A stretch of 64,000 bases of DNA from Eutreptiella sp. 'Long Island Sound 2002' (Eukaryota > Protista > Euglenida): the NCBI GenBank assembly GCA_964036045.1, contig OZ038379.1, forward strand, positions 55,056,001 to 55,120,000, written 5' to 3'. The first letter of the stretch is position 1. Every line of letters starts with the position of its first letter. The notes under the pieces were generated by a model. The model was given only the letters and a program-made list of their open reading frames with translations, was not told the DNA's origin and did not search any database. This document shows, piece by piece, positions 2,393 through 44,587 of the stretch. The translations under genes were made by a program, and so were the position numbers.

Positions 2393-2429
2393 AATTGCCT
2401 CTTCACTCTTAAGGGTTTCACTTTTAGGG

Positions 2430-7779: not shown

Positions 7780-7784
7780 TTGTA

Positions 7785-7960
7785 ATACGGCCGTATACCT
7801 TGTGTATACGGCCGTATACTCGCGGTATACGGCCGTATACCTCCGATACACGGCCGTATACCGCGAGTACACGGCCGTATACCTGCCCATTCATTCTGGG
7901 TATACGACCGTATACTCGGGGGTATACGGCCGTATATTGCGGGGGGTACGGCCGTATACT
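7785..7960. repeat. Dense array of TACGGCCGTATA palindromes
   Basis: About 9 copies of (a)tacggccgtata(c) spaced ~17-22 bp apart, immediately upstream of ORF 8029. Confidence 0.85.
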
Positions 7961-8028
7961 CATAGTATTTGTTGCCAATTTCAATCTATTTTGACTAGTT
8001 TTTTGTTAGAATTCCACCCCTTCTTTCT

Positions 8029-8814: not shown

Positions 8815-10675
8815 GGCAGTGGGAGTCAGGGTAGTCAATCCGCCTCCCCAGCACGTTGCCTGCCCCCAGAGCCGGCATGACTACCCCCTTCCAACCCCGC
8901 CCTTGCAGCTTTGTGCCGGGACCCGGTGTACCGCAAGGTGCACATCTCGGGTGTACATGTGCACAATGTGCAGTTTGGGGCTACAGGAACACACAGGCAA
9001 GGGAAGGATTTCTGCTGTGCCCGCTTGTGCAGCAGGAATGAGAGGCAAAGGGAGCTAACTTGCCTTTCAAATGCACATGCGCAAGCAAATTTTCTAAGGT
9101 GGTTCCATTGGTCCACCATTCAAGTGGTACAATACAGTACCTCACAAAGAATGCCGGGGCATCGCCATATGCAGGATCCTTCTCCTCTTTCCGCCATTTG
9201 CGTTGTCGAGGCGCATAGTAGAGGGGAGGTATGTGTTGAATCAAGGGGAGTGCTCCATAGTCTCACGCAAGGGACCCCGATGCGGTTGGGTGTATATGGA
9301 GGAAGTGTTGTGGATGCGAAGGTTTACAAGGGCCGGGACTGGTTTTTAACTCCAATGCCTACCATGGGCGTGTCCCATGGACGGGCGCGCACTATGCCAT
9401 TGTTTTCTACAATGGGTGCAACCCAGATTATCTCCGTGATGAATCTATTGAAGAGTTACCGGCCTATGGCTTTCGTCCTTGGGGCCACTAGGAAGCACCG
9501 TATACTACTGGTATACGGCCGGCCGTATACCTCCAAGTATACGGACATATACCTGTCAGTATACGGCCGTATACCGGAAGTATACTTCGAAGTATTTGCA
9601 CTAATTCTTGCACGGTGTGTCCCTGTTGCATGCGCTTGTGCGCACGGTCCCATTGGGCAACTAGCCCACATATGACTGGAACATGTTTCTACAGCAATTA
9701 TTCTTACAACTATGTTTACGAATGCCCATCCGATGGAGAAGGTGCTCTGTTTGGAGACTATTGAAGAAGTTTGTGAGGGAATAAAACGCCGACAATTGAC
9801 CCCCTATGCAGTATGTGATCTGCATCCACAAACATCAACGCCACCACATTCTTTTGCTTCACATCATATGGCCCACCCTGTTTTTTTTACATTAGGATTG
9901 CGGGGACAGAGGGCAACGGCAAAGACATTTGTGGATTCAAACGGTTGCATCAGCATCGCTTGGTGATGATGTACTTTTACGACCCCATGCCTCAGGCCTC
10001 ATGATTATTTTAAAAGATGGTGAGGTAGATGCAGCCGACAAGGAGGCAATCAACCTACTCGCATGGATGCGGCGGCACCATCTTTCCATCCGGGCATTGA
10101 AGGGTTGCATGAGGACAACACACCTTACCTGTCCCTGGGGATTGATGTGTTGATTGTACATGTTAGACAACGTGCCCCATCTCTTCATAGCACAGCGGGA
10201 AACCACAACTCTTCCGGCCCGCGGAGGCGGGTTTGAACCCCAAGGGGGGTTGAGACGCACCGGACGTCCCGAACGCCCCCTTTTATCAGAGACCGAGAGC
10301 GCGAGAGAGAGAGGGACACAATGGGGGGAGGTCCAGAACGCATAAGTTAGAGAACGTGAGAAGAGTCCTGTGGATACGCCATGTTATTGGGTAACGTGCT
10401 AAGGGAGGCAGAGTGGTGTAGTCGTTATCATCGTTGACAGTCGTCGCATAGATCGCTGTTTCGAGCCCGGCCTGTAGCAGTGCTTCCTCCCACCGGCCCC
10501 GCCTGACTGGGGACTGGGACCCCTCCCGCTTTTGATTCTTTTCACCACTCCCTGACGGGCAGCTACAGAACACAGGTGATTGACCGCATAGGCGAAGAGC
10601 AAAAAGGAACCCGGCCACCTGCAGCAGTGCGCCCCACCACCGCCCCCGCCCGACGGGAGGCTACCACCCCACCCG

Positions 10676-12432
10676 TTGCTTGCCTTTGCCCGAGCCGCCG
10701 CTCGGGCGGCTCGGACAGCGGGAATCGAACATGGGACCAGCGACGCTGGCATCCAGGGTGCTTCCACTGGGGCAGGCGGCGCAGCATCCGTTCAAGGACG
10801 CGTGAGGGACTGGAGGAGGGATGCCCAACCTTACCCAACCTTCCCACACCGCGCTTCGCTTGGGCGCCATCCATAAGAAACCAAGTGTGCCTAACCGGAT
10901 GTATGTGGAACGGACATGTAGTAGTAGTCGTATGTGGGCAACAGCCATTGGCTTGAGCCTCAGCACATTGCATGGTTACGACCACTACGAACTGATTTGT
11001 GTGGAGCCGGAACCTATGAGCGGGGGTACCCGGTTAGCCAAGTATCCGTCTCTATGCCAGCCTGTCCCAGGGGAGGGTATTGGAGGTGGCCGCTAAAGAG
11101 GGTACACGGACATGTGGGTTGGAGGAATTGCATCATATCTTCACCACCCTGGTTGCATGTGCCCACGCTGAGGACAGCATTCGGAAGTATGAGGAAAATA
11201 GATGTTTGGCTGTTGTAAACTGTTATGATGCCACTGTTTTTCATAATGCCAGCGCCACGCGCGTGTTGTGTTTGTGGACCTATGGGAGGATAGCGGGGCA
11301 CACCATGATGGTCAGGCATGGGCCTCATGGTGGGTTTTTGATGGGGGAGATGATATGGCCCATCTGCAAAGGATGGATGCCGTGAGGATGGATGCCGTGG
11401 GGAAATCGAATGACCAAGTCAAAAAACTTGAGGCAGAGGGCGGCATAGAACTTGGGGGAACTCCCAAAAAATTATTGTGTTTTAAAGGTGGGGATGGGAA
11501 AGTCATGATGTCGGGTTCGTGTGGGAAATGTTGGAATTGCAATCTCAAGTATGACCAATTCGAAGCCCATTTTATTTGCAATGGCAGATTTTCCAATGCT
11601 TGCTCGCATTGGCTCCCTTATGTCTTGCATCCCTTCCGTCCGCAATGTTGGATATGTGGCACATTGTTGTGCAAGGGTGGCGACAGGCATTGGGAAATGT
11701 CTCAAGGACAGTGCCCGCACACGGGGCTCACCAGGAGCCCTCAAGGCCATGTCCCATGTCATTTCTATCCTCCGAGAAGAGGCGAAGCACATCCCTGTGT
11801 CTGAGAGAGTGATACGTGCTCCCTCGAAAGAGAAGGAACACACTCTCGACATTGACGCCTCCCGCCTTTTTTTGAAACACATGAGTTGCACACCGAGTTG
11901 GTGCGCATTGTTGCAATGTATTGTACCAATATTGTTTCGTGGGAGGGCAACATGTGGCTGGCTCAGAACCAGTGCCGTCCTGCACCACATGTTGCAGGCC
12001 TGTTACTATATGCAAAAGATTTGGCGCCATGTGGGTCCTGTTCCCATGGATCAACGCCAACGCTATGCATGCATGGTTGCACAATTCACCCGGGCATGGA
12101 AAGCACTGGGCCGGAGTGTTGCGGTTTGGGTGCATTGGGTGGTCTGCCACAGTGGTGCACACCTCCAAAGGCGGGGTAATTTTATGAAGTTCTCTCCCAT
12201 GCCCACGGAATGGAGGAACAAAAGTTTTAAAATGTATATCCGCCATTGTTTCCAAGGGCGGAAGCTGAGCAAGCCTTATGTCACCCGATGGGGACTAAGG
12301 CATTCTCTGCACCTATATGCCCTTGATTGGGGCATCTGTTTGTGGTTTGGGGAAAAGGGCTTGGGTAGAGAGGGCATCAGGTTTGGCATGCAACGCATGC
12401 GGAGGAAGCAGCGTGCACCAAAACACATGTAG
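10676..12432 (+). pseudogene. RAG1/Transib/CMC-like DDE transposase, frameshifted
   Basis: VVNCYDATVFHNASATR (D1), WASWWVFDGGDD, GGDGK (D2), CWNC, and WVHWVVCH-x19-E-WRNKSFK. The last matches RAG1 YFHKTLAH-x19-E-SGNKLFR spacing exactly. Confidence 0.8.
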
Positions 12433-12949
12433 GTATATATCATGTGATATGATATGATGTGCAATATGCATACGTATGTATATTAAGTATATATGATGTG
12501 CATAAGTGGATCACATTTGACATTTCAGATGGGACGTCAAACAAGGATGCTTCTTGTGGTCTTCTGCTTTGCTCATACGGTGGTCTTTTGTGTGTACAAT
12601 GTGTTTGGTGGTTGGAGAGTCATGAGTACTGACAAGGGGGGGGGGGGGGGCGGTAGTTGATGAGAATGGTGGCATGGGTAGAAGGCAGAAAGTCCCCGTT
12701 CACTCCGAGTATACGGCCGTATACTTCTGAGCATACAGCCGTATACTCCGAAGGATGCGGCAAGAATACTTCTCCAATACTTCGAGTACGCTGACAAATA
12801 CCTCAAAAACTGCAGATTGCCACACACAAGTGTGGATGTATGGAATCGGGTTTGTGGTTGTTTGACCCCCTCACCCCCTATTTTCAGGGTGCCAAACTCA
12901 TTTTTTCATATCCCATGGGCACACGGAACGACTAGGTACATGTGACAAA

Positions 12950-14940: not shown

Positions 14941-15317
14941 CCGTTCACTATGGTCTTTGCAATTGCCCAGTGCCAGGTGGTGGAACCGCCACGGATGCAG
15001 CGGCATAATATAGAAAAAACATCTGGGACGCATGTGGCACAAGCGCGTTGCATTGCAGGTAAGAGACACAATTACCGCGTTTTTGCGTGTGTAAATGAGC
15101 CTATTTGCGTGCCCACCGTACTTTCTTTACGGGCGCAAAAAGGGCCTTTTGCGCACGCAAAAGGGTGTTTTTGCGTTCTCGCTCGAAAAACAAGCGACGC
15201 GCAAAAGGTGTGATTTGCGCACACAAAAGGGTGTTTTTGTGTCCCAGGTGCAAAGTTTGCAAACGCGCAAAAGGCGCGTTTTACGTACGCAACAATGGGG
15301 TAAAGGAAGCATTTGCA

Positions 15318-15512
15318 ATGCCATGGCACCGTGTGGGTCACAGGTATGCATGCTACATTTGCACGCGCAATACCCCCGGTTCAAACCCAACTGCCTCAAA
15401 AGTTGAAACATGTGTGCGGGTCATTGAAGAATCCTGCGAAGAAGTTGAAAAGGTTGAAGATCAATGAACAGTTCAACTTGAAGAACCGCAACCACCCAAA
15501 GAGGCGCCGACG
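15318..15512 (+). pseudogene. Small CxxC basic ORF, putative zinc finger (duplicate at 19471-19665)
   Basis: ATG at 15318: MPWHRVGHRYACYICTRNTPGSNPTA, then after a frameshift SLKNPAKKLKRLKINEQFNLKNRNHPKRR. Lies directly downstream of a TTTGCGCACG array. Confidence 0.5.
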
Positions 15513-15639
15513 ACAAGGAGATGGCAGAAACGCCACCACTGACCATCACTTTTGAAATGAATGACACATTGACGTTGAAAGGAGACCACCCAAATTCTTC
15601 GCGACGTGGCCTATCCCCCCGCAAAGCCAGCACACATGT

Positions 15640-16660
15640 GCCAAAGGGTCGTTACACTTGAAATTGCGACACCCTGAGAGGGCAACTTGCGCCTTGGTGT
15701 CAGCTATAATCGCACACACAACGGGAGTTGCAAACCCTCCCTCATTCAAAACCGGCATCTCATTCACTGCCAACACATAACTGCCTTCATTGTTTGGGTG
15801 CGTTCCGGCATGGAATCTCAATTTTGCTCAAGGTTTGGCAATGGGGGGGGATGACATTGCCAGCAGTCCTTCCTTTCCAATGACCACCGGACTTTGGACT
15901 CCATGGGATGCACCATTTCGTGCATTGTGCGGGCAGTGGGTTGGTTAAGGCTTTGATGCATCACCATGGGTGGAAGAAGGGGAGGGCATTGGTTTGGGTG
16001 CAGTGGTTTTGGGATGACATCAGGGTTGAGAGCCCTACGGCCACGGCGGCCGATTGTGAGCAAGAGAAGGTGGGAAAGAAGGCCCTGCGATTGGAGCAAA
16101 CTGCCGCGGGGGCATGGGTGAAAAGGCAAGGGTGGGATTGCATTGTCGACTACTTGGAGGGGAACAATCTTTTACAAGTCCCAGTGCAAGTGGGGGGGGG
16201 GGGGGTTACAATGACATGGACTGCTTGTTGGCGTTTGTGGGGAGAGAAATTTGCAGTGACTTGTGACCTTGTGTGGAAGGAGCGGAGGTTGGACCTTCGC
16301 GATTTGGATGTTCTGAAAGGTGCTTTGTCCGAGATGGGGAGTGCCCACAAAGCTTGTGGGTTTGTGGTGACCCACCTGTGGGTGGACCACATGTGGGGGA
16401 TTGCGAGGGAATGGGGTACCGTGTCCGCATTCGGTGCTTTCAGGGGTGAAGGGAGGCATTAGTCGTGGTAGAGTGAGATTAGGAAGAGGAGCTTCAAGGG
16501 GGGAAGTAAGAAACGGGGGTCTCGCCTACGGGGGGCATGCCGAGCACTGAGGAACGGGTGGGTCGAGGTGCTTCGGAACAACAACCTGGACTGGGGCTCG
16601 TATGCCAAGGGGTTCAACGTCTGGCAGCCTTCGTGGACCCGACAAGAGGTAGATGGTAGT
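15640..16660 (+). pseudogene. C-terminal half of a RAG1/CMC-like transposase (copy 1)
   Basis: CLHC, DFGLHG, THLWVDH-x19-E (GEGRH). In-frame TAG stops. Confidence 0.7.
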
Positions 16661-16904
16661 GCTATGAAGTATTGGGAAAGGGTGATGCGTAAGGGGAAGT
16701 TGTAGGGTTTCTTACATGTTTGTCTTGCATACTTTGGTGATTTCGTGGTGGAATCCCACTTGGACACGTGTGACTGAATGATCGGAACAATGCAACGAAA
16801 GATCTCAGCAATTGCCTCCATGTTTGCTTGGATGCATGGCATGCATTGGACCCGGGATGTGGGTTTGTGTTTGGGTGTAACGGGCAGGGGGGGGGGGGGG
16901 GTAA

Positions 16905-17086
16905 AGCAGGCATTTGCGTGGGTTTTGCGTATGTAAAAGGGGTATTTTGCGTCCCCAGTGAAAAAATACATGGTAAGTAAAAAGGGCAATTTACACGTGC
17001 AAAAGGGCCCTTTTACGCACGCAAAAATGAAGTAAAATACCTGAAGGATAATACCGGACCTCGAAAGCACAAGAGAACACTACGGG
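16905..17086. mobile_element. Right end of a TTTGCGCACG-family element: subterminal array and terminus ...CACTACGGG|TA
   Basis: Array 16905-17030, then tacggg (17081-17086) and TA (17087-17088). Repeated in the duplicate at ~21056-21239. Confidence 0.5.
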
Positions 17087-17462
17087 TAGGGGTAGGGGAC
17101 CACCACGGGTGTTTCCAACGTACAACCCAAGCCATGGGGGTATTTTTCGCATGCCGGATTCGAATTTCATACTCATTTTTTACCAAAATGGTGTTTTCCA
17201 CCAATTCCTCATTTTTGCCCCATTTTTACCTCCTTTTTGCGGTGTTTAGTTACATACATGACATCCACCAAATCATTCAACATCTCTATAGTCGTATATT
17301 ATATCCTATTTCTATATCCTATATTATAAACCCCCGTCATCCCTCCATGCATTCTCAACAACACGCACCGCTGCATGGAGGTGCCCAGCGTGATTGTCTG
17401 GTACCTTTGGAATAAATTTTTTGCCTTGAGCTACATCTTGGTTTGTGGTGAAAGCCTTTGTA

Positions 17463-19077
17463 CCCTTCGTGAACCGGCCGTTTGAATGGGAGATTCACGG
17501 CAGCGTGAATATCACAAATTTTAGCCGTGTTTTGCTTGTAACTGGGTGCCATCGTGTGCGTTTCTCGTGCTATCTTCGCCCAAAGTGAGATCCAACGAAT
17601 GTGTGCAAATTAGAGGTTTTAAGTAGCCACATGGTTCAACATATTCGGTGAGAATTGGTCAAATCTGAAATTCACGCACCCGAATTCACACATAAATTAG
17701 GTTACGGTTAGGGTTAGGGCATAAAGCTAGGTTCACAGATTCACGAGACTGTGAAATTCGCACGAAATTCGTACGAATTTCGTACGAATTTGCCCCAATT
17801 TCCACTGTTTCACTTTCTCACGGCTCTGAAAGCCTTTCTTTGCTTCTTCTTGTGACCATGTCCCAGCAGTCCCGCCCCGATCCTGCTGCCGACACCCTCG
17901 CGCAGTACCAAGCCCTCCCCGTCGCCCACCACCAATTGGAGCAGGCGACCTACCAGTCGGGGGCACTGGGGGTGGACGATGTTGTGGGCTAAAGAGCATC
18001 CCTCGACCCCTCCCCCGATGTCATTCACATCGACCATCGCAGCCCCACGCGCAACTCCTATCTTGGGGGGAGGGCTTGGTCCACAACTTTGTGGAGGGAA
18101 CTCCGCCGCCAACTCCCCTCTCTTACGTTTTTGCATCTGACCCCTTAACCCGCCACCATTGACCAACTGCTCAATTCCATGCGTACGAACTCGGTGGGGA
18201 AGCCAAAGGACGCCCACGTCCAGGTGTACCCCACCACTAACCTTGTGTATACCCCCCCCCCCCCCAACTGCGACATGTTGTGCCTGCACGATCTTGCTGC
18301 AGGGGCACCATCTGACCGCTCCTTTTTCCCCTTCTCCCGGCACCTTGCCAACCCCCGGTTGTGTCACAATTTGGGCATCGCCCCTTTCCATCCCACCATC
18401 CCCCCACAGGTGCACATCCCCGACATCACCCACCCCACCTTCTACAGTACAAGTTCTTTGCAATGGTCCCGTGGTGCCTCATGTGCCCCCCCCTTCGTTT
18501 CGAGTGAACCCCACCTCCGCACCGAACACCTTCCCGAACCCCCTTATGGGGTGATGGGCAACCACGACCCCGCCCCGGACACGGTTGGCCCCTCCCAGCC
18601 GCCCCTCAACTTTGTTGATGGGAAAGGCTACATTGTGCTTTGGGGGCGTGTGGAACCACGAGATTGTGAGGTGGGGTGGAACAAGGTGATGAAGGCGTGG
18701 GGCAACGGCGACGAAAAAGTCGTCCCAACAAATTTTGGGCTGCTATTCAACGCCGGGCGGACTGAAGATGAGGCAAGGGATCCGGATCTCCCGCGGCGCT
18801 GGCAAAGCAAAAACTCCTTGGGGTCGGGCGTCGGCGGGCCTCTCTTCAAGAAGTCCCCCCCCCCCCCACCGTAAGTGTACCTCAAGTTGGGGACCTCCAC
18901 CCAGTGACGCCGGGCAGCGTCATCGTGGCGAGTGTGGGGAGTGGGGCCCAGCTCCCCCACTCCGATCTCGCCACCCACCCCGAGGGCCTCCCCCCCGACA
19001 GTAGGGACATCTCGGGGTGCCACCTGAGTAGCTTCCTCTGCGTGTCACAGGACTACCAGGTGGCGGTGGAGGCGGGG
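17463..19077 (+). mobile_element. Truncated left part of the CCCTTCGTGAA element, produced by the tandem duplication
   Basis: TA|CCCTTCGTGAACCGGCCGTTTGAATGG at 17461. Near-identical to 21614-23226 and ends inside the dioxygenase domain. Confidence 0.9.
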
Positions 19078-19789
19078 ACGGCCCTGGGGGAGGCCGTTCA
19101 CTATGGTCTTTGCAATTGCCCAGTGCCAGGTGGTGGAACCGCCACGGATGCAGCGGCATAATATAGAAAAAACATCTGGGACGCATGTGGCACAAGCGCG
19201 TTGCATTGCAGGTAAGAGACACAATTACCGCGTTTTTGCGTGTGTAAATGAGCCTATTTGCGTGCCCACCGTACTTTCTTTACGGGCGCAAAAGGGGCCT
19301 TTTGCGCACGCAAAAGGGTGTTTTTGCGTTCTCGCTCGAAAAACAAGCGACGCGCAAAAGGTGCGATTTGCGCACACAAAAGGGTGTTTTTGTGTCCCAG
19401 GTGCAAAGTTTGCAAACGCGCAAAAGGCGCGTTTTACGTACGCAACAATGGGGTAAAGGAAGCATTTGCAATGCCATGGCACCGTGTGGGTCACAGGTAT
19501 GCATGCTACATTTGCACGCGCAATACCCCCGGTTCAAACCCAACTGCCTCAAAAGTTGAAACATGTGTGCGGGTCATTGAAGAATCCTGCGAAGAAGTTG
19601 AAAAGGTTGAAGATCAATGAACAGTTCAACTTGAAGAACCGCAACCACCCAAAGAGGCGCCGACGACAAGGAGATGGCAGAAACGCCACCACTGACCATC
19701 ACTTTTGAAATGAATGACACATTGACGTTGAAAGGAGACCACCCAAATTCTTCGCGACGTGGCCTATCCCCCCGCAAAGCCAGCACACA

Positions 19790-20810
19790 TGTGCCAAAGG
19801 GTCGTTACACTTGAAATTGAGACACCCTGAGAGGGCAACTTGCGCCTTGGTGTCAGCTATAATCGCACACACAACGGGAGTTGCAAACCCTCCGTCATTC
19901 AAAACCGGCATCTCATTCACTGCCAACACATAACTGTCTTCATTGTTTGGGTGCGTTCCGGCATGGAATCTCAATTTTGCTCAAGGTTTGGCAATGGGGG
20001 GGGATGACATTGCCAGCAGTCCTTCCTTTCCAATGACCACCGGACTTTGGACTCCATGGGGTGCACCATTTGGTGCATTGTGCGGGCAGTGGGTTGGTTC
20101 AGGCTTTGATGCATCACCATGGGTGGAAGAAGGGGAGGGCATTGGTTTGGGTGCAGTGGTTTTGGGATGACATCAGGGTTGAGAGCCCTACGGCCACGGC
20201 GGCCGATTGTGAGCAAGAGAAGGTGGGAAAGAAGGCCCTGCGATTGGAGCAAACTGCCGCGGGGGCATGGGTGAAAAGGCAAGGGTGGGATTGCATTGCC
20301 GACTACTTGGAGGGGAACAATCTTTTACAAGTCCCAGTGCAAGTGGGGGGGGGGGTGTTACAATGACATGGACTGCTTGTTGGCGTTTGTGGGGAGAGAA
20401 ATTTGCAGTGACTTGTGACCTTGTGTGGAAGGAGCGGAGGTTGGACCTTCGCGATTTGGATGTTCTGAAAGGTGCTTTGTCCGAGATGGGGACTGCCCAC
20501 AAAGCTTGTGGGTTTGTGGTGACCCACCTGTGGGTGGACCACATGTGGGGGATTGCGAGGGAATGGGGTACCGTGTCCGCATTCAGTGCTTTCAGGGGTG
20601 AAGGGAGGCATTAGTCGTTGTAGAGTGAGATTAGGAAGAGGAGCTTCAAGGGGGGAAGTAAGAAACGGGGGTCTCGCCTACGGGGGGCATGCCGAGCACT
20701 GAGGAACGGGTGGGTCGAGGTGCTTCGGAACAACAACCTGGACTGGGGCTCGTATGCCAAGGGGTTCAACGTCTGGCAGCCTTCGTGGACCCGACAAGAG
20801 GTAGATGGTA
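19790..20810 (+). pseudogene. C-terminal half of a RAG1/CMC-like transposase (duplicate copy 2)
   Basis: Duplicate of 15640-16660, with THLWVDH...EGRH*. Confidence 0.7.
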
Positions 20811-22008
20811 GTGCTACGAAGTATTGGGAAAGGGTGATGCGTAAGGGGAAGTTGTAGGGTTTCTTACATGTTTGTCTTGCATACTTTGGTGATTTCGTGG
20901 TGGAATCCCACTTGGACACGTGTGACTGAATGATCGGAACAATGCAACGAAAGATCTCAGCAATTGCCTCCATGTTTGCTTGGATGCATGGCATGCATTG
21001 GACCCGGGATGTGGGTTTGTGTTTGGGTGTAACGGGCGGGGGGGGGGGGGGGTAAAGCAGGCATTTGCGTGGGTTTTGCGTATGTAAAAGGGGTATTTTG
21101 CGTCCCCAGTGAAAAAATACATGGTAAGTAAAAAGGGCAATTTACACGTGCAAAAGGGCCCTTTTACGCACGCAAAAATGAAGTAAAATACCTGAAGGAT
21201 AATACCGGACCTCGAAAGCACAAGAGAACACTACGGGTAGGGGTAGGGGACCACCACGGGTGTTTCCAACGTACAACCCAAGCCATGGGGGTATTTTTCG
21301 CATGCCGGATTCGAATTTCATACTCATTTTTTACCAAAATGGTGTTTTCCACCAATTCCTCATTTTTGCCCCATTTTTACCTCCTTTTTGCGGTGTTTAG
21401 TTACATACATGACATCCACCAAATCATTCAACATCTCTATAGTCGTATATTATATCCTATTTCTATATCCTATATTATAAACCCCCGTCATCCCTCCATG
21501 CATTCTCAACAACACGCACCGCTGCATGGAGGTGCCCAGCGTGATTGTCTGGTACCTTTGGAATAAATTTTTTGCCTTGAGCTACATCTTGGTTTGTGGT
21601 GAAAGCCTTTGTACCCTTCGTGAACCGGCCGTTTGAATGGGAGATTCACGGCAGCGTGAATATCACAAATTTTAGCCGTGTTTTGCTTGTAACTGGGTGC
21701 CATCGTGTGCGTTTCTCGTGCTATCTTCGCCCAAAGTGAGATCCAACGAATGTGTGCAAATTAGAGGTTTTAAGTAGCCACATGGTTCAACATATTCGGT
21801 GAGATTTGGTCAAATCTGAAATTCACGCACCCAAATTCACACATAAATTAGGTTACGGTTAGGGTTAGGGCATAAAGCTAGGTTCACAGATTCACGAGAC
21901 TGTGAAATTCGCACGAAATTCGTACGAATTTCGTACGAATTTGCCCCAATTTCCACTGTTTCACTTTCTCACGGCTCTGAAAGCCTTTCTTTGCTTCTTC
22001 TTGTGACC

Positions 22009-23882
22009 ATGTCCCAGCAGTCCCGCCCCAATCCTGCTGCCGACACCCTCGCGCAGTACCAAGCCCTCCCCGTCGCCCACCACCAATTGGAGCAGGCGAC
22101 CTACCAGTCGGGGGCACTGGGGGTGGACGATGTTGTGGGCTAAAGAGCATCCCTCGACCCCTCCCCCGATGTCATTCACATCGACCATCGCAGCCCCACG
22201 CGCAACTCCTATCTTGGGGGGAGGGCTTGGTCCACAACTTTGTGGAGGGAACTCCGCCGCCAACTCCCCTCTCTTACGTTTTTGCATCTGACCCCTTAAC
22301 CCGCCACCATTGACCAACTGCTCAATTCCATGCGTACGAACTCGGTGGGGAAGCCAAAGGACGCCCACGTCCAGGTGTACCCCACCACGAACCTTGTGTA
22401 TACCCCCCCCCCCAACTGCGACATGTTGTGCCTGCACGATCTTGCTACAGGGGCACCATCTGACCGCTCCTTTTTCCCCTTCTCCCGGCACCTTGCCAAC
22501 CCCCGGTTGTGTCACAATTTGGGCATCGCCCCTTTCCATCCCACCATCCCCCCACAGGTGCACATCCCCGACATCACCCACCCCACCTTCTACAGTACAA
22601 GTTCTTTGCAATGGTCCCGTGGTGCCTCATGTGCCCCCCCCTTCGTTTCGAGTGAACCCCACCTCCGCACCGAACACCTTCCCGAACCCCCTTATGGGGT
22701 GATGGGCAACCACGACCCCGCCCCGGACACGGTTGGCCCCCCCCAGCCGCCCCTCAACTTTTTTGATGGGAAAGGCTACATTGTGCTTTGGGGGCGTGTG
22801 GAACCACGAGATTGTGAGGTGGGGTGGAACAAGGTGATGAAGGCGTGGGGCAACGGCGACGAAAAAGTCGTCCCAACAAATTTTGGGCTGCTATTCAACG
22901 CAGGGCGGACTGAAGATGAGGCAAGGGATCCGGATCTCCCGCGGCGCTGGCAAAGCAAAAACTCCTTGGGGTCGGGCGTCGGCGGGCCTCTCTTCAAGAA
23001 GCCCCCCCCCCCCCCCACCGTAAGTGTACCTCAAGTTGGGGACCTCCACCCAGTGACGCCGGGCAGCGTCATCGTGGCGAGTGTGGGGAGTGGGGCCCAG
23101 CTCCCCCACTCCGATCTCGCCACCCACCCCGAGGGCCTCCCCCCCGACAGTAGGGACATCTCGGGGTGCCACCTGAGTAGCTTCCTCTGCGTGTCACAGG
23201 ACTACCAGGTGGCGGTGGAGGCGGGGGAGACGCGCTGGGACACCATTCAGCTGCAGAGGGAGGACATGCTGCTGATGGTGGCCACTAGCCGCCACCATGG
23301 GTTGCATGCCCCCCCCAACTCCAAGGATGGGCTGCAGGCGGTTTTTTTTTATTTTGTGGACCCCCCGTCCCCGGCACCGCCACCACCAGCCCAACACCAC
23401 ACACCTGGACCTCACCCCCCCCCCCCCCCCCCCAAGAGGCCCTGGCCGTTGCCGGGGATTTGTCCAGCTGGGACTTCCCTAGCGTGTACGAGGTGTTGTA
23501 GGTGGCGAAGGGGGTGGTTGGGAGGGTGGGGTTTTGGGAGGGGGGTGCTGCCCAGGCCCTCTTCGCCGACGCCCTCGAGGCGGTCTCAGCAGGCCCCTCG
23601 ACCTGCCCCTTCCACCCCACCTTCCTCTCCCGCTCCGCCCCGAGCTCCAATCTTGGCGTCATGGAGATCGCCAAGCAGAGCATGCTCTTCTTCGTGGGGA
23701 GCGTGTACCAGATCGAGATCTGCAAGGGGCACAACGTCGATGCGGGGTCGGAGATCCACTTCGCCATGTCGGGCGTTGCCCCCCCGATGCAGCCGACCAC
23801 GATGTGGCATCTGGTCAACACAGCGCCAGCGTGGCGGTCGCCCAAATGTAGGAAGGCTGGGGCATGGTCAATCACATGTTGA
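22009..23882 (+). pseudogene. Cargo ORF1 with PhyH-like 2OG-Fe(II) dioxygenase domain
   Basis: ATG 22009 is in frame with ORF 22330 across two TAA codons. GYIVL, AQLPHSD (H 23107, D 23113) and EDMLLMVATSRHHG. The C-terminal frame 23502 (LFADAL..PSTCPFHP) resembles ORF 6183. Confidence 0.7.
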
Positions 23883-24230
23883 TGTGATTGCAAGGTGTGC
23901 TTGCTTGTGTGTTTGCTTCCTTTATTGCCAAATTGGACGAAATTCACGTGAAATTCATACGAATTTTGTACCAATTTCACGTGAATGCCTGGGTGTGAAT
24001 AGAGAAGCTTCTGTGAAATTCGCACCCATTTCGTACGAATTTCTGTGAATTTCGTCCACTTTGTTCGTTTTATTGTTGCATTGCCCCATCTTCGCTCCCC
24101 CTTTCTCCATTGGTGCCTTGCACATTTCTCCCTGTCTATAGGTCCCGTTGCACGCGTGGTCGCCCGACATTCGGCGGCAGGGCGGGGGCAGGGGGGGGCG
24201 TTGGGGGAGTGGGTGGAGCAGTAGCATCAA

Positions 24231-24805
24231 GTGCAGTGGGCGGGTGCGTGGGAGGTGCGCGCGATGAGCGCGGAGGCCGCCAACGGCGACCTCGAGGCCC
24301 GCCTGTCCAGAGCCAATGAGGACAGGCGGGGCGCCGAGACGCGGTTGGCGGACCTTACCAAGGAGAGGGACCGCTTGGCCGCGAGGGTGAAAGCCCTGGA
24401 GCGCGACTTGGGGATGGCGCGCGAGGCCGCGGGGGCACCGGCAAAGCCAGTGGCACAGACAGGGAAGGGCCTGAGGGTGCCGAGGGCCCAACAGTGGAGA
24501 CGGCGGGGGGGGGGGGGGGGGGCAATGCCTCCGATGTCCGGTACCTTCTGGCCGGCGCGCAGGCGTGGCATGCCCAGGCCGAGTGGCATCCCCAGGCGGA
24601 GGCATGCGCCGGCCAGATGTCGGCCGTGTTGACGGGTCTCCGGATGGCCCTGCTAGTGAGTGGCCAGCAGGTCGAGGTGGACACCGTGGCGCCCGACGTT
24701 GCCAAGGTCAGTGCCGCCCACGATGTCGTGGGCCGGCAGTACCCCCCGCATCGCCTCACGTCAGCGGCGATGGACGCCTCCTTCGTTGAGGCAGTGGTGG
24801 AGTAG
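24231..24805 (+). pseudogene. Accessory ORF2, coiled-coil protein (frameshift at G-run ~24506-24522)
   Basis: LEARLSRANEDRRGAETRLADLTKERDRLAARVKALERDL heptads, continuing in frame 24494..24805. Confidence 0.55.
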
Positions 24806-25359
24806 AGCTCCCAGGGCTCCGCTGGCCGGAGCTCCGCTCCACGGGGGGGGGGGTAGCTCAACCTTTAACTTCGGGACCACCCGTCCCTTCTAGCCTGGAC
24901 GGATGTTAATTGTACATGTTTATATATGAATACATGTAAAAATATGCTGACCCCCCCCCCGGGCATGGGGAGTTTGAACGACATGTGGGGTACCCCCCCC
25001 ACTTTGCGAAAGTTCCTTCAACACTGTTTGTATTTTAGTTGGGGTCTCCTGTGCCAGTCGATCTGTTACACTGCTGAGGGTCTCAACTGAAATGATGAAA
25101 AAAGTGGACATTGGTCCGGGTGTGCGGTAACCCCTGAGCTTCAGCCCGTGCTTGCTTTGTGAGGGCCAACGAGGGCAAAAGGATGACTCAAATCTTTTTT
25201 TTGAAATAATTCGCTCGGATCCACGTGAAATCCGTACGAAATTCGTGCGAATTTCACGGAACCTTTAGTATTCACACACATTCATTCACGTGAAATTCGT
25301 ACGAAATTCGTACGAATTTCGTACGATTTTTGACGTGAATCTCACCAAATTTAGTCACC

Positions 25360-27211
25360 TTGGGCATGGGGATGGTAGAAACCTCCGAAAAAAACCTCCC
25401 CAATTCCACAGGCTTTCTACCAAACACCATGCTGCGTGGTGATGCAGCTCGGCCCAAGGCACCATTCCATTTGGTGGCCGATCGTACGCAACGGAGGCGC
25501 CTACAAGAGCTCCAGCAAGTTGTTACCAAGGAGCTTGCGACACCCTACACCGTCAAGTAGCTGCCCCACACCGGGCAAATAGTGCTTACCCTAGAAACAA
25601 GAGTTGTAGTGGCCGTCACGCCTGAGCCCACCATGGAGGAGAGCTTGATTATGGCCGTCTGGCGGATCTGGTCATTGCACCTCTCTAGGACTGAGGCGCG
25701 GTGCCTAGTGGGGAGCATGACGCACGGTGTGGTATGGGACCAAGTGTACAACATGCTTCGGCAGCTAGCGTTACCGGAGTCCCCGGCGTTCACTACCTAT
25801 ACGGGAGACGACACGACCATCCATGGTGCGGCCTGCTACCTACCCGACCGCATCGGCCACCTGTACAAGTGTCCACAAACCCCACCCTCGGACATCATGC
25901 AGCCCGGGGACCCACGGCTGCATTGGTTGCCTATTGCGGTGGATGGTACATCAAGGCATGAGGCCTCGTACGTCCATTGCACGCTTGGTGGCACCACCAA
26001 CCCTAACCAACTGTCTAGTTGGTGGCAATCGGGGGGCAGTAAAAATTGGGAGACCCTCTACGTGGCCTCCCAAGAAATTGATTTTGATGTCGAGTTGCGC
26101 AAGGCCGCAACCGTAAGTTTTAAAGATATGGAAGGGAACGATAGGCAGTCCCCCCCTTTTTTTTCTGTGTGCAGATGGGAAAGCACAGGTGCTCATGGCG
26201 GGCTGCCACAACTGGAAGGCAGAATCCCCTGGTGCCAGCGTGTGTTGGGTCTGCATGTGCAACCGTGCTGTTTGCCTTGCTACCTTTGGCAGAACAAGTG
26301 CAATAGACGGCAACTTGGAAGGGACTATTGCCATAGGTGCTGTATAGAGGACCATTATGAGTGATAGGCGAGTGCTTGATTACGTCCTCCATGGGGTCCT
26401 CCGTGTCCTGTTGTGTGGCATCAACGGGACATGGGACCGAGTTTTACAATCAACAGGTAAGGCACCGGCCACTGTGGCACGCACCATTCTCCAACCAGTT
26501 CTAGATGAGGCACGGCTTGCAGCACGAACTTGCACCCGTGCCTCATTAAACAATGACAAGGCAAATAGCAAGGGGAAGGTAAGGATGGAGTGTGCTGCTG
26601 CCATCCATTTCATGCGGAATAGGGGTTCGGAGAAGATAATAGATGCTTGCCTACAACACCCTAGTGTGAGGCAACATCAAGTAGGAGGAAAAAGTTGGGA
26701 GTCGGTATGCAAAACATGGTGGGAGAATTTTGCAAGCATGTGTGTATACGCTTGGCGTTCCGCATGGTTCTCCGGGGCCGAGTTGGGGCGGCTCCGGAAC
26801 CATAGCATAGCCATGGGCACCGCCCACAATGAGCTCCAGTGGGGCAATTTTCTGTGGATTCATCTTTGGATCGACCACATTCATTATTTTGCAAAGAAGT
26901 GGAGAATCTTGTCAAAGTTCTCCTGCTTTGCCATGGAGGGAAGTCACCAGAGGCTGAAGCGCATGTTGCGCAACAGCGGGGGCCTAAGCCTCCTCCGGGG
27001 GAGACTAGGGGTGCAAGTGGTTGTGGACAACCACACCATTGATGATCGCCTTTGGTCGCATGGGTGGGATGCGGCCAAAAGGGCACAAAATTGGCAAGGG
27101 CCCATAAGTGTACAAATGTATTCAAGCCGTACAAGAAGACGGCTTCTAACCGACATGCAGCACCTTCGGACTCTACAGCGGCGGTTCCGGTGTCGCAAGA
27201 AACGGACATGA
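25360..27211 (+). pseudogene. Near-intact RAG1/Transib/CMC-like DDE transposase (2 in-frame TAG, 1 homopolymer frameshift)
   Basis: D1 IAVDGT (25942), GGSKNWETL (cf. RAG1 DESDHETL), D2 CADGK (26174), CWVC (26243), LDYVLH, H26861-x4-H26876, and E26936 exactly 20 codons after the second H. Confidence 0.85.
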
Positions 27212-27986
27212 GGTCACCACACAAACCCAGACCATTGTTGCCTATGGCCAGGGTGCATGCAGGGATGCACCGGAGAGCGTACCTGGGTTGTTAGGACAAA
27301 TCAGGGGGTGCACACCGGTAACATTTGTGTAGAATCGCGTGAATTCACGTGAAATTCGTACGAAGTTCGTACCAAATTCGTGCGAATTTCGTACGAATTC
27401 ACGTGAATTCACGCCTATGAACTGGCTACAGGCTTGCCGGGTTTTGGCACCTCTCGTTTGGGGCGTGGTCATGGTGGATGCTTTTGGGGCGTGACCTTCA
27501 CTGGATGATGCGTAATGAAGCCGGGGGAAGAATTTTTCCCCCTCAAATCCCTCGGAAGGAACCAAAAATATGGCGTTTCCCCCCGAAAACCTCAAAATTT
27601 GGGTCGATTCACGTGAATATTCGCGCCCCATCCAAACGGCCACTTATCCCCCGTTCACGAAGGGTACATTGGCGCTTGTGAGCCTAACCCAACTAACATC
27701 TGTTTGTGCCCTTGAGCCACACCAATGAGTTTGTGGTCAAAGCCCTAGTGCTTGTGCCACAACCCCCACTTCGCATCTCTTTGTGCCTGTGAGCCAAAGC
27801 AATCTGTTTGAGTTTGGAGCCATAGCGCTACTGACACAAACTCTTGCATAATGGTGTTTGGTGGACAAGCTAGTGAGCCCGAAGAGAAGCAGTCCTTCCA
27901 CCTCTATTGCCACGTCCCTGCACTTGACCCCCCCCCCCCCCGGCAAGCACCAAAATCATCATCTGTTCTTGTCTAGCACCCTCACA

Positions 27987-28959: not shown

Positions 28960-31900
28960 TTGAGGGGCTGCGATGACACTCAGGAGCTTATAGCTCATCA
29001 TACACATCACCGCTGCCCCTAGAGACAACATTTTCTGTGGCTGTGGTGATACCCCATACCTTGTTGATGTTGTTACATGTCACCGGTGCCCATGGAGACA
29101 TGATTTCAAGGGCTGTGGGCAATATCCAACACCTTGTTGATGATGTTACATATCACCGCGGCCCGCGAAGACATGATTTCAAGGGTTGTGGTGATGTCGC
29201 ATACCTTGTTGATGATACACATCCGCGCTGCCGGTGGAGACATTGTTTTAGGGGCTGTGATGATACCACACACCTTGTAGATCATTAAACATATCAACGC
29301 TTCCACCGGAGACATCATTTCGGGGGCCGTGGTAATGTCCTAAAGGGTAGGACCCGTCTTCCTTTCAAATCGTGAAGCTGTAGCTTGAGAAGTCCAAGAC
29401 CCCCCCCCCCCTCCGGCTGAAGCCGCCCGACGAAATCTGCAAATGGTTGCTTACCACCTTTGCCTATTCCTTTAATAGCCAGTGTTGCGCATAGATGCCG
29501 AAGCAAATGCACCCATTAACGTGTACCAATCCCTTTTTGCGGGGCCTGCCGGTGTGGGCGGAGGCACCACACTAGGGTTTGGCCAGATCAGAATTTCCTG
29601 GCCTTCTATCATCCACCAGAGTCATCCTTGTTTCCGAATGGTGTCCTAATTGGCAACTGGATAGAACTAACACTATTAGCATCGATGTTAAGGTCGTCCA
29701 TGGGCTGGCCTGCTGTGAGCACGCCGCCAGAAGCCAGGAAGCGTGCCGCCAGCACAGGCCCCAAAACACGACAAAAATTGGGGTTGCAACAATTTCTCCA
29801 GCTTTGAAGCTGGCCCTAACCCCCCCCCCCCCTTCTGAAGCTACAGCTTCAGGATTTGAAAAAAAGACGCGTCCTTATGGATGATTGTACATACCACCAC
29901 TGTCCCTGGAAACATGTTTTCGAGGGCTGTGGGGATACCCCACACCTTACAGACCATCATACACATCACCGCTACCCCCTGCTGTCATGGTTTCAGGGGC
30001 TGCGGTGACAACCTAGACCCTGTAGACCATGATACATATCACCGCTGCCCTTGGAGAGATGATTCCATGGGTTGCGGTGATGTCCCATACCTTGTTGATG
30101 ATCATACATATCACCGCTGCCACTGGATATGGTTTCAAGGGCTGCAGTATGTCCTACACCTCGTAGACCATCATCGTCATACATATCACCGCTGCCCCTA
30201 GAGACATGGTTTTAGGGGGTGTGGTGATACCCTGCACTCTATAGACCATGATACATATCACCAGTGCCCCTACAGACAGGATTTCAAGGGTTGTGGTGAT
30301 TTCCCATACCTCGTTAATGATCATCCATATCACCGTTGGCCCTAGAAACATGGTTTCAGGGGCTGTGGTGATGTCCCACACCTCGTACACCATGATATAT
30401 ATAACCAGCGCCCCTGCAGACATGGTCTTAGGGCCTGCGGTGATGTCCGACAGCTTGTTGATGATGTTACATATCACCACTGCCTATGAAGATATGACTT
30501 CAAGGGCTGCGGGGATACCGCACACCATGTAGCCCGGGACACATGTCACCGTTGCCCCTAGAGACATGAATTGTTGTTGTGATGCCCCATGCCTTGTTGA
30601 TGATCATGCATATCACCGCTACCAATGGAGATATGGTTTCAGGGGCTGCGGTGGTTCCCCACACCTTGTAGATCAAAATACATATCACCGCTGGTTTTAG
30701 GGGCCGCGATGATACCCTACACCCCACACGGCATTGTACATATCACTGCTACCCTTGGAGACATGATTTCAAGGGCTGTGGTGATGTCTCATGCTTTGTT
30801 GATGATTATACATAGGAACAATGCCCCTAGAGACATGGTTTCAGGGGCTGCAATGATGTCCTACACCTCGTAGACCATCATCATCATACATATAACCACT
30901 GCCCCTAGAGACATGGTTTCAGGGCTATATTGATGCCTATACGCCATGATACATATCACCGCTGCCACTGCAGACATGATTTCAAGGGCTGCGGTGATGT
31001 CCCATACCTTGTTCATGATCATACACATCAATGCTGCCCCTAGAGACATTGTTTCAGGGGCTGCGGTGATGTCGTATACCTCGTACACCATCATACTTGT
31101 CACCGCTGCCCCCCAAACATGGTTTCAAGGTGTGCGGTGCTGTCCGACAGCTTGTTGACGATGTTACATATCTTTCTTGCCCCTGGAGACATGACTTCAA
31201 GCTGCGGTGATGCCTCAAACCCTATAGACCACAATACATATCACCACTGCCCCTAAAGACATGATTTCAAGGGCTGTGTTGATGTCCCATACCTTGTTGA
31301 TTGATGATCATATGTATCACCACCGCGCCTGCAGTCATGTTTGCATGGGCTGTGGTGATGTCCTACACCTCGTAGACCATCATACATATCACCGTTGCCC
31401 CTGCAAACATGGTGTCAAGGCGCGCAGTGATGTCCCACGGCTTGTTGATGATGTTACATATCACTGCTGCCCCTCCAGACATCATTTCAGGGGTTGCGCT
31501 GACGCCGTATAGCTTGTAGATGATCGTACGTATCACTGCTGGCCCTAGAAACATAATTTCAAGGGCTGCGGTGATGTCCTACGGCTTGTAGGTGATCATA
31601 CATATCACCGTTGCCCTCCAGCCATGGTTTTAGGGGCTGCGGTGATACCCCACACGGTGTAGATCATCATACATATCAGCGTTGGCCCTAGAGACATCAT
31701 TTCAGGGGCTGCGGTGATTTTCTACAGCTTGTAGAGGATCATACATATCACGGTTGCCCTTGGAACCATGTTGTCAAGGGGTGCGATGATGTCCTACACC
31801 TTATGGATCATCATGCATATCGCCGCTGTCCTTGGTGACATGGTTTTGGGGGCTGCGGTGATACCCTACACCTTATAGACCATGATACAAATTACCGCTG

Positions 31901-32230
31901 CCCCTGGACACATGATTTTAGGGGCTGCGGTGATGTCTTGTGTTTTGTAGATGATCATACATATCACTGCCGCCTCTACAAACATGGTTTAAGGGGCTGC
32001 GGTGATACCCTACACCTTGTACACGAGGATAAATATCATCGTTGCCCCTAGAGACATGATTTCAAGGGGTGCGGTGATATCCCATACCGTGTTGATGATG
32101 TTACATATCACTGCTACCCATGGAGACAAGGTTTCAGGGGTTGCGGTGATATCCTTTACCTTGTTGATGATGTTACATATCACCGCTACCATGGAGACAT
32201 GATTTCTAGGGCGCAGGTGATGTCCTACGC
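28960..32230. repeat. Degenerate ~72-bp minisatellite (ctgcccctagagacatgatttcaggggctgcggtgatgtcc...catacatatcaccg), ~37 units, interrupted at 29349-29875
   Basis: The gcccctagagacatg core recurs about every 72 bp (e.g. ~30192, 30265, 30337, 30409, 30481, 30553). Confidence 0.9.
29349..29875. mobile_element. ~527-bp MITE-like insertion with ~44-bp imperfect TIRs inside the minisatellite
   Basis: Left aggacccgtcttcctttcaaatcgtgaagctgtagcttgagaag versus reverse complement of right aggacgcgtctttttttcaaatcctgaagctgtagcttcagaag. TSD not resolved. Confidence 0.75.
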
Positions 32231-34959
32231 CTTGTAATCGAAGTCCAAGGCTAGGAAGAGCCACAATGTTGCCATTTACCACCGTGGAGCCAAAAAGTGT
32301 CAAACACACCCAAGGTATGCTAATTTTGATTTGTGGATTTCCATGGTAACTGATTATTTGTCACAGTGGCGAGTAGTGCCAATAACGTAAAGAATGACCC
32401 TCCCGAGAAGTGCAAGGTGTGCTGCACGGGATGCTAGATTTGGAGCTACGACCTTTAATGAAGGGGTGAGTTCCCGGAGGTGGATGGCCCCGCGGGGTCA
32501 CGTCAAGAATGCCATTACGGGTTTATGGAACCGGAAGGGGGGTCCACTGCCCGCCAATAGGTGCACAACCAACTTGTCTAGATACCGAGGATTGACCGGA
32601 GCATATCGCCTAAATACGGGCGCTGGAGAATGAGGGCAGGGGCACCAAGTGGAAACTGGGGCGTTGGGAAGATTCTTGCAGCAGAATTGGTGTTGAACAG
32701 TTTCGGATGGCCTAACATCGCTACCATGGTCTCGGAAGATATCACTTCTGGAAACATTCTAGCCGCGGTTACACGAACTTGGCACGAGGCACATCGCAAC
32801 ACTCGAGAAGTTTGATTGGGAGGTATTGGAGGAGCACGTCAAGGACGAAGTGGACCGTGGACAAAGCGCCAACGACATGAAAACCGGTCTTTGGGCAACG
32901 ATTGGGGCGGTGTTAATGAGAATCCCCAAACACTAAGTGTGCGGGCTCTTCTGGAAATGAAAAGCGCCAAAAACAAAAAAGAGAGAACAGAGGGTTGTGT
33001 GAGGATCGGATAGGGCTCTCCAAGTCATGGTTGTCAAGGCTTGGACCTACACTTAGTGCGTGATTGGTGCAGCGGCGGTATTATGAACGGTAATTGGATT
33101 TTGAGTGGTGAAAATGGCCACATTCCAGGTCCCGAGGCTTGAAAGGGTCATGGGGGGCACCATGTCATGTGGACAAGAAGGCGAACACCCATTTCTATGT
33201 CCACAAAGTGGGATTGTGGGCGAGGCGGTGGCTCGGATTCCTCCACTGCACGACGCTCAACTATAACTAGGCTTTGATCAGTGCCACATGTCCCCCCGCA
33301 TGCTACAACATGGAGGCCGCAAGTCCTCGCCAAGTGTACCATGAGACAACCTTCCACCTCACCTTGCCAACAATCTCGGTAGCACACGCTCTAGGGGGGC
33401 GCCCTTGCACTGTGCACGCACTACATGCACATTGTCCGCTAACTTTTTAGACCAAGTTACCCCCAAAGAGTCCCCAAGGACACCCCTTCCAAACGCTCTT
33501 ATGTCACCCCTACCTCAGGAGCATGTCCCACTGTAGACCCTGGGAGACCTCCTTCAGTGGGGGCGGGAGGTGGTCCATCTTCCACAAATGGGGGCGGCAC
33601 GATGGACCCGGGGGTGCTGGGTATGGCTGTCTAGCATAGCCCCGTTGCCGACCGTCTCGGGATGACGGCATGGTACTTGGCTACCACGAAGGATCCTTGG
33701 CCTTGATCAAGCTCATGAGGTCACCTTCGATTATAGCACTTGGACGTGATACAACACTTGGAGAGGATGCTGGATTGTCCCTCGGCCTTGATCATGATAC
33801 TGAGGTCCCACATCAGCCGTGCCTGCTCGGGGTCCCCATGATGGGGGGGAAACAACATGGATACATCACCTCTACCTTCTTGGGGTCCCATGATGGGGAG
33901 AAATCAACCTAGGAAAGAGTGGGTGTGGTGGAAATGAGCAAAAAATGTGAACAAAGGTGGAAATGGGTGAAACTAGGTGAAAATCCAAAAATGCCATATC
34001 CCCAATGTGGAAGAAGTATCAAAACCTACTCTCAAACAACAATGATGCCTCCCTAGTATCACAAAGTATGGGTCTCTAGTACGGCCACATGCCCAGATAG
34101 TTGCAGTGCGCCTGCACTGCGCTAAGTGCGCCCCCTAGGAGCCATGCCCCAGAAAACGGAGGCAAAGTTTCCATTTCCAACTTTTTGGACCGTGATGCTC
34201 ACAAACAGCCGTAAAAATGAGCGACAACATGCAAACACTAGTGTGGGGGCTACGTGTGATCCAGCATAGGAACACCGTATGCAGTGCCAAAGTACCGGAC
34301 TATCTTGGTGGGCTATCGTAAGTGTAGAACGTTAGCGTCCAGGATTCGTAGAGGAGTGGCTGATGGGCGGTCATTATCCCTGCATTTGTATTTCACGGGC
34401 GACAAGGACTGCTAGTGTATTATAAAGCTGCACTGTGGATGTAGCTCCTTGTGGAGCATGATGGAGCGCTTGACACAGATTGATTGGGTCGTATTGGATG
34501 AGGAATACAATGGGTATAATGGTGAGCCTAGGGAGGGCAAGGTGACCGACACGCTGCGGGAGGCTGGGATAGGGTGGTTTGGAAACTATGATACACTCGA
34601 ACACCTTTGGAGGGATTGTGTCCAGGAAAGTGAGGAGCTGCTGCTGCAATCATGGAACGAAGAGACCTCAAATTAACCGGCCCATCTGCTCACGGACATT
34701 CTCAATACTTGTTGTAAGGCGTTACTTAGTGATGGGCTATCACTAGACATGCTGCTAGCGTCTGGCACGGAAACTGGTTCTCAGTAGGACATGGCCCCGC
34801 ATCAAAAGCCACTCAATCACACCCGCCCCCCTCACTACTAGAACGCAGTAGGAACGTGCCGCGTCCAGTGTGTGGCCCATTTGGCCTAGTAGGACCCTGC
34901 CCCATCCGATCATGTCTGAGCTGGCAGACGCTAGTGGCAAGTCTGGCTATCACATCCGG

Positions 34960-44536: not shown

Positions 44537-44587
<51 letters not shown>

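Follow-up and report, generated by a model that had tools for sequence, protein, structure and literature searches.

A TA-flanked transposon family with a 10-bp offset between its two terminal repeats and a transposase predicted to resemble RAG1 and Transib

The two ends of the transposons described here differ by exactly 10 bp. In the first family, an outer terminal motif and an inner box are separated by a short gap at the left end and by a longer one at the right end; the additional 10 bp form a conserved unit within a long terminal inverted repeat. The same offset occurs in a second, diverged family. The elements lie next to TA, and their transposase is predicted to share the core fold of RAG1 and Transib. 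On balance, we lean towards reading them as a TA-inserting cut-and-paste family of a microbial eukaryote, related to RAG1 and Transib, whose ends would be offset by one helical turn and would enter each complex as one short and one long end.

Terminal repeats in the window and in related loci

The window, i.e. the whole 64-kb stretch of DNA analysed, is repeat-rich, has about 52% G+C, and is eukaryotic in appearance. No Pfam match was obtained for its long ORFs, and no match was obtained in an Rfam scan of the window. It contains two independent elements of family 1, with the following parts.

21614–27664, + strand: family-1 element of 6051 bp, non-autonomous and internally deleted, with TA at 21612–21613 and 27665–27666
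21614–21683, + strand: left (short) terminal inverted repeat, with the motif at 21614–21624, CCG at 21625–21627, the box at 21628–21640, and then the shared inner region
27585–27664, − strand: right (long) terminal inverted repeat, with the motif at 27654–27664, CGGGGGATAAGTG at 27641–27653, and the box at 27628–27640
6525–7277, + strand: miniature non-coding element of family 1, 753 bp, with GTT at the left end, AGGGGGTTAAGTG at the right end, and TA on both sides
17463–19093, + strand: duplicated left end and first 1.63 kb of the element, from a tandem duplication
25429–27211, + strand: transposase pseudogene, with in-frame stops at 25558–25560 and 26345–26347 and a frameshift near 26152–26160
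22300–23400, + strand: remnant of accessory ORF1 (about 400–420 aa in intact copies)
21893–21957, no strand: left subterminal array whose 11-bp units are based on the palindrome TTCGTACGAA, in direct and inverted repeat families
23928–24046, 25216–25345, and 27329–27400, no strand: further 11-bp arrays, which bracket each coding block
6777–6863 and 6934–7031, no strand: 11-bp arrays of the miniature element, repeat families in two inverted blocks

The 6-kb element shares 74–84% identity with an intact element at locus L137 and is shorter by about 0.8 kb. The C-terminal piece of its pseudogene has about 90% protein identity to the intact transposase P0155. The ends of the 753-bp element and those of the 6-kb element are 83% identical, and both elements are bordered by TA.

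Scanning of the 64-kb window located the outer motif CCCTTCGTGAA exactly at 6525(+), 7277(−), 17463(+), 21614(+), and 27664(−). When one mismatch was allowed, seven matches were found, against 1.2 expected from shuffles. At the three + ends, 3 nt separate the motif from the inner box GCCGTTTNNATGG; at the two − ends, the separation is 13 nt. In both elements, the gap between CCCTTCGTGAA and the inner-box sequence GCCGTTTnnATGG is 3 bp at the left end and 13 bp at the right end. An earlier note on this DNA had reported these two spacings for 6525–7277 and 21614–27664, and they were confirmed, with a difference of exactly 10 bp. The note had also stated that the spacers vary in sequence between copies. 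This is true of the left spacers, which are completely different (GTT at 6525 and CCG at 21614), but the right segments, AGGGGGTTAAGTG at 7277 and CGGGGGATAAGTG at 27664, vary little and are identical at 11 of 13 positions.

MAFFT alignment of the ends (A3) showed that the similarity between left and right ends of the window family continues for about 60–70 bp beyond the inner box. A gap of 10 columns is the sole real indel between the left and right ends of family 1 over about 70 columns. Two boxes with a free spacer are one description of these ends; they can also be described as an extended inverted repeat in which one of the two arms carries a single insertion of 10 bp.

The fifth end, at 17463, was missing from the earlier note. 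It belongs to a tandem duplication (14941–19093 and 19094–23246; 4.15 kb, 99.3% identity over 4061 bp) that includes the left flank of the element. The duplication junction is inside the transposon, 1.63 kb from its left end, which leaves a spare left end at 17463. Because the duplication copied the flank together with the first 1.63 kb, this end is not independent. The duplication could be a true rearrangement or an assembly effect.

The window also contains repeats of other kinds. At 28960–32280, tandem repeats of 72 bp form a long array, in which the units have diverged to 60–80% identity; it may encode a protein of 24-residue repeats. Two arms of an inverted repeat of about 260 bp are found 7.5 kb apart, at 7529–7785 and 15313–15570; between them are clusters of the palindrome GTATACGGCCGTATAC (7785–7966, 9522–9581, and 12702–12769), and this region may represent a further transposon that has subterminal repeats of its own. 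Repeat families of about 103 bp and 45–60 bp are common to 41700–42165, 44170–45490, and 62950–63979. At 44427–44651 and 57245–57386 there are also a microsatellite rich in CAA and tandem copies of a 10-bp unit, GGGACCTATG.

With two independent elements in the window, the conservation of spacer length rests on related loci. These additional loci were fetched around homologous transposase genes and then scanned for ends, and almost all of the additional copies came from one ENA metagenome assembly, ERZ25074135, which has megabase contigs. Family 1 was defined by transposases about 90% identical to that of the window. Tabulated by side, all 10 independent left ends have 3 bp and all 10 independent right ends have 13 bp, so the proposed conservation of the two lengths was upheld. 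The complete family-1 elements, 0.75–9.2 kb in size, are all of the 3/13 type (8/8). No element with 3/3 or 13/13 ends, which would speak against an obligatory short-long pair, was seen among only about ten complete elements. Judged from these sequences, the geometry of each end is constrained, which by itself implies no pairing of short with long ends.

Short patterns of this kind match readily by chance. When public metagenome and viral contigs were scanned for the outer motif followed by a gap of 1–30 and GCCGTTT, the result was chance matches only; their spacer lengths had a flat distribution, and none contained the complete inner box. For the elements themselves, chance co-occurrence of the motifs or an assembly artefact is hardly credible, as the motifs form the tips of 60–70-bp inverted repeats that bound TA-flanked elements, and 10 further loci with homologous transposase genes show the same architecture around these genes.

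TA is found beside all 20 family-1 ends and TGTA beside 16 of the 20; no duplication longer than TA was detected at these 20 ends. Judging by these flanks, the target looks like a preferred TGTACA in which TA is duplicated. Empty target sites were searched for both window elements, and none were found. A nested insertion at L141:2469 was considered as proof of TA duplication and did not stand. The two insertions found within related copies belong to different transposon families. One is a 2.25-kb transposon at L146 4115–6365, inside a family-1 element, with the tips CAGGGGGG...CCCCCCTG and bordered by CTACCG; the other is a 422-bp insertion at L142 11558–11980, also inside a family-1 element, and rich in AAAGTAAGACC repeats. 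Four tips were seen across the ends examined (CCCTTCG, CCTGCGG, CTTGCGG, and TCTACGG). The termini are CC...GG and not 5'-CA..TG-3'.

One transposase, P0295 (587 aa), is identical at three loci, each time within a 3/13 element. Since the protein is identical at three loci, recent activity is likely, and family 1 is probably active in the genome represented by ERZ25074135. The three elements are on three contigs (L145 5510–10223, 4.7 kb; L146 1008–10222, 9.2 kb; L147 3230–10211, 7.0 kb), and their different lengths suggest a variable cargo.

The 10-bp insert and the second family

Within the long segment lies a conserved unit, which reads GGCCGTTAAG in the first family and GGTGGCTAAG in the second. 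Its consensus is GGnnGnTAAG, and the two families agree at 7 of 10 positions. In intact family-1 copies, the 13-nt segment is CGGCCGTTAAGTG; at the long end, GGCCGTTAAGT precedes GGCCGTTTGAAT, so that GGCCGTT occurs in tandem at a distance of 11 bp. At the short end, GGCCGTT occurs once, at a nearly equal distance from the tip (+14 vs +13). Compared in this way, the long-end unit looks like one extra copy of the inner repeat. The conserved long segment may act as a binding site instead of a spacer.

The tandem GGCCGTT of the intact long end, compared with the one copy of the short end, supports an account in which the two ends carry n+1 and n binding sites and no pairing rule exists; like-with-like pairs would still transpose. 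By recruiting one more subunit of the transposase, or another protein of host or accessory origin, the additional site would make the ends differ in strength or in cleavage order. Mu, Tn7, the P element, and Sleeping Beauty are models for ends that differ in these ways. Further points in favour of this account are the likeness of the family-2 insert GGTGGCTAAG to the units that lie downstream of it, GGGGCTCATTT and GGGGCTAAGT, and the conservation of the insert, which equals that of the boxes in alignment A3 and in the census. We regard this account, the main rival of the short-long reading, as possible, if on the unlikely side. Against it, the first GGCCGTT copy in the window subfamily has diverged to GGGGGwT while the length is unaltered, and in both families the offset amounts to exactly 10 bp, although the repeats recur about every 11. 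Moreover, the relatives RAG and ProtoRAG favour unlike ends by experiment (PMC8289069).

The transposases P0162 and P0287 have about 40% protein identity to family 1 and define family 2. The family-2 ends read TA|CCTGCGGCTCACT and then TGGAAATGTGAAGTTGGGGCTCATTT, a sequence unlike that of family 1. In the complete family-2 element at L143, the end at 4056 has GGTGGCTAAG between the blocks, and the end at 12154 is without the insert. Both of these end types are present at L138, and L144, a subfamily with 62% identity, is consistent with them. The family-2 spacing is 0/10 bp, with one 10-column gap in the alignment (A4).

Relative to the transposase gene, the long end is 5' in family 2 and 3' in family 1. 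The subterminal sequences past the repeats weakly track gene orientation (z = 2.9 and 1.7, vs 0.4 for the cross-comparisons). The switch of side between the families needs an extra event, for example an interior inversion, and this weighs against the preferred reading. Recombination between the inverted inner repeats could have inverted the interior, which would bring the long end to the opposite side of the gene and would fit the weak subterminal signal.

Uniform spacing within one family is to be expected anyway, because all copies share one ancestor. The shared ancestry of the family-1 copies would suit a neutral accident, in which one ancestral 10-bp tandem duplication was tolerated and inherited and had no role in the choice of ends. 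The terminal repeats are also nearly free of indels, so the conservation of length is not peculiar to the spacer. We nevertheless consider a neutral origin quite improbable. The offset was kept despite diverged terminal motifs (CCCTTCGTGAA vs CCTGCGGCTCACT) and transposases that are only about 40% identical; the insert is itself conserved between the families at the positions given above; and the offset is retained even by subfamilies that share just about 83% identity at their ends. As far as the alignments can tell, an exact 10-bp offset kept across two diverged lineages argues for constraint and against neutral accident.

More distant families were also encountered. The transposase of a third family, at L139, is 27% identical to P0005. 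This locus has two third-family transposase genes (1041–3077 and 10001–11587) 7 kb apart, followed at 17880–21587 by a 149-bp satellite array. No recognisable ends were found in L139 or in L148, and L140, which is from another sample, is too short to include its ends.

Transposase, subterminal arrays, and accessory genes

The intact transposase has about 590 aa. When the last 287 codons of the window pseudogene were used as a query against 1.84 billion proteins, 261 relatives were identified, and the full-length ones have about 550–600 aa. Intact copies on the ERZ25074135 contigs were obtained by a second search. No annotated fungal genome proteins were among the transposase relatives found. 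Pfam searches of the transposases gave no match even at E up to 10, and nothing relevant was obtained with the family profile against PDB sequences.

Alignment A1 showed several nearly invariant residues (P0155 numbering): D167, D243, C266-x2-C269, H472-x4-H477, and E497, the last located 20 residues past H477. The pattern in RAG1 structures is D600, D708, C727-x2-C730, H937-x4-H942, and E962. An AlphaFold model built from alignment A1 has a mean pLDDT of 80.9. The Foldseek search of the PDB with this model gave 49 matches with E below 0.001, all of them RAG1, HzTransib, or BbRAG1L; the best E was 2.4e-10, with TM of 0.5–0.57 across about 590–690 columns. The RAG1 entries are mouse or zebrafish RAG1 cores, the Transib is from Helicoverpa, and the RAG1-like protein is from amphioxus. 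The next match after these 49 was Hermes (E=0.02). From the predicted structure, we conclude that the transposase may be placed, very remotely, in the fold group of RAG1, Transib, and CACTA (CMCT). To our knowledge, no CACTA-type structure has been solved. RAG1 could be just the available representative of a wider fold group, and 'RAG1-like' in the model may mean 'CMCT-like'.

Other transposon superfamilies were also considered. The usual TA-duplicating superfamily is Tc1/mariner, which has a DD(34-41)E/D transposase and paired-like helix-turn-helix domains. It was rejected, as no Pfam transposase matched and the fold search gave RAG1, and not Mos1 or Tc3. PiggyBac was rejected as well: the flanks are not TTAA, and there was no match to DDE_Tnp_1_7.

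Arrays on the palindromes TTCGTACGAA and TTCACGTGAA flank every coding block, and in the miniature copy they occupy the central part. The arrays at L136 (46–243, 6604–6895, and 8877–8963) have the same layout, which is also found with other palindromes in other families: GCTCAsTGAGC (L138), ACGCGTACGCGT (L139), and ACTTCGTACGA (L140). The terminal motif includes a half-site of the array palindromes. In family 1, TTCGTGAA corresponds to TTCGTACGAA and TTCACGTGAA; in family 2, the terminal half-site GGCTCACT corresponds to the array palindrome GCTCACTGAGC. The arrays may be transposase sites, like the subterminal repeats of CACTA, or promoter elements (with CACGTG and GTAC cores).

Intact elements contain two or three extra ORFs, of about 400–420, 244, and 170–233 aa, which are without Pfam match. 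They are located at L137 5667–9206 and L141 6394–9469, and in the window at 22300–23400 (ORF1). More than 100 relatives of ORF1 were found, all from one ENA sample. ORF1 itself had no Pfam match, and its structure prediction, at pLDDT 30, was unusable. On both counts, two candidate assignments of ORF1 were unsupported: a 2-oxoglutarate dioxygenase, suggested by an HxD...H pattern, and a RAG2-like propeller. No RAG2-like gene was recognised in the element.

Comparison with known systems and a proposed mechanism

Asymmetric bipartite ends are known for the RAG-related clade, with separators of 12/23, 27/31, and 4/13 bp (PMC8289069, PMC9435367). In ProtoRAG of amphioxus, asymmetric ends with fixed 27/31 separators are needed, as shown by experiment (PMC8289069), and AanRAGL, a RAG-like element of the alga Aureococcus, has 4/13 separators (PMC9435367). 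As in the RAG-like and Transib elements, the ends described here have terminal and inner elements, which are close together at one end of the transposon and farther apart at its other end. Between the two ends the separation differs by 10 bp here, compared with 11 bp for 12/23 and 9 bp for 4/13, i.e. about one helical turn. The pattern of D, D, CxxC, Hx4H, and E(+20) and the predicted core fold are apparently shared with RAG1. There are also clear differences from RAG1 and Transib. No sequence similarity to them was detectable in Pfam or PDB sequences. The flanks are TA here, whereas a 5-bp duplication is found there; the tips are CCC, CCT, or CTT here, whereas a CAC-initiated, heptamer-like sequence is found there. 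The repeat-like, conserved long segment and the 11-bp palindromic arrays around every gene are further distinguishing features of the present family.

The earlier note had compared these ends to the 12/23 rule as an analogue. The comparison gained from the asymmetric ends and from the RAG1-like predicted fold; on the other hand, the long 'spacer' proved to be a conserved unit, and the idea had already been published for this clade. Because of the RAG1/Transib predicted fold and the motif spacing, the likeness of the ends to 12/23 is probably homology, beyond mere analogy, provided that the model is right.

The CMCT (CACTA-Mirage-Chapaev-Transib) clade includes ESTA of rust fungi, according to Kojima 2025 (PMC12730594). 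As described there, ESTA elements are EnSpm-like and have TA duplications, and their similarity to RAG1 is visible only by HHpred (PMC12730594). TA duplication together with a transposase remotely like RAG1 is the same combination that is apparently present here, if the predicted fold is accepted. The tips differ: CACCAC...GTGGTG in ESTA, and CCCTTCG or CCTGCGG here. In three Melampsora consensus sequences shown there (ESTA-10_MLP, ESTA-4B_MLP, and ESTA-2_MLP), the first shared inner block seems by eye to be set 10 bp deeper at the 5' than at the 3' terminus, which is a lead only (PMC12730594). No mention of asymmetric ends in ESTA was found in the available parts of that paper (PMC12730594).

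Subterminal arrays of short motifs in both orientations are common to CACTA/En-Spm and to the present family, and the layout of the zinc/histidine motifs is alike. CACTA elements have CACTA tips, a 3-bp duplication, and transposases of Pfam Transposase_21/24, and the En/Spm arrays are TnpA-binding sites. In contrast to CACTA, Transposase_21/24 was unmatched here, and the arrays are located between internal genes as well. Ends with short and long spacers are also found in two other systems. PiggyBac has 13-bp terminal and 19-bp internal repeats with spacers of 3 and 31 bp, and its tips start with CCC; it uses a TTAA target and has the DDE_Tnp_1_7 fold. The P element has 9/21 spacers, a THAP/RNase H transposase, and an 8-bp duplication. 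Although their short and long spacer ends are alike to those described here, these features of target, fold, and duplication were not found in the present family.

The preferred short-long reading could work as follows. Each 60–70-bp repeat consists of a terminal, presumed cleavage motif, inner units of about 10–11 bp, and further shared sequence. The extra 10-bp unit at one end places the inner region one helical turn farther from the presumed cut, on the same face of the DNA. By analogy with RAG, ProtoRAG, and Transib, the active site residues D167, D243, and E497 might cut at the TA|CC boundary, the terminal 11–13 bp might act as the counterpart of the heptamer, and an N-terminal DNA-binding module might read the inner units. 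The one-turn offset would then make the ends non-equivalent, and a productive complex might consist of one short and one long end, as experiments have demonstrated for RAG (12/23) and ProtoRAG (27/31).

A stronger form of this reading would be a so far undescribed, still active, superfamily-level branch of the RAG1/Transib fold group with a true short-long synapsis rule homologous to 12/23, in which the asymmetry is ancestral to the CACTA-Transib-RAG group and did not originate in the RAG lineage. The weak 10-bp hint in ESTA would fit a one-turn asymmetry of such ancestry. We find this stronger form rather doubtful.

The principle of asymmetric bipartite ends is already known from RAG-like and many Transib elements. 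Published work has followed such ends back through ProtoRAG, the algal RAG-like elements, and some Transibs. What is new is a lineage with TA duplication, non-CAC tips, no detectable sequence similarity to those elements, 11-bp arrays, and no Pfam model. Such a transposase family, being without a Pfam model, would improve the annotation of transposons in protist and metagenomic assemblies. The natural, seemingly intact copies, with one 587-aa transposase at three loci, are small enough to test. These findings bear on how the 12/23 rule arose as V(D)J recombination evolved. If unlike ends are needed here too, the geometric basis of the rule would predate RAG and Transib.
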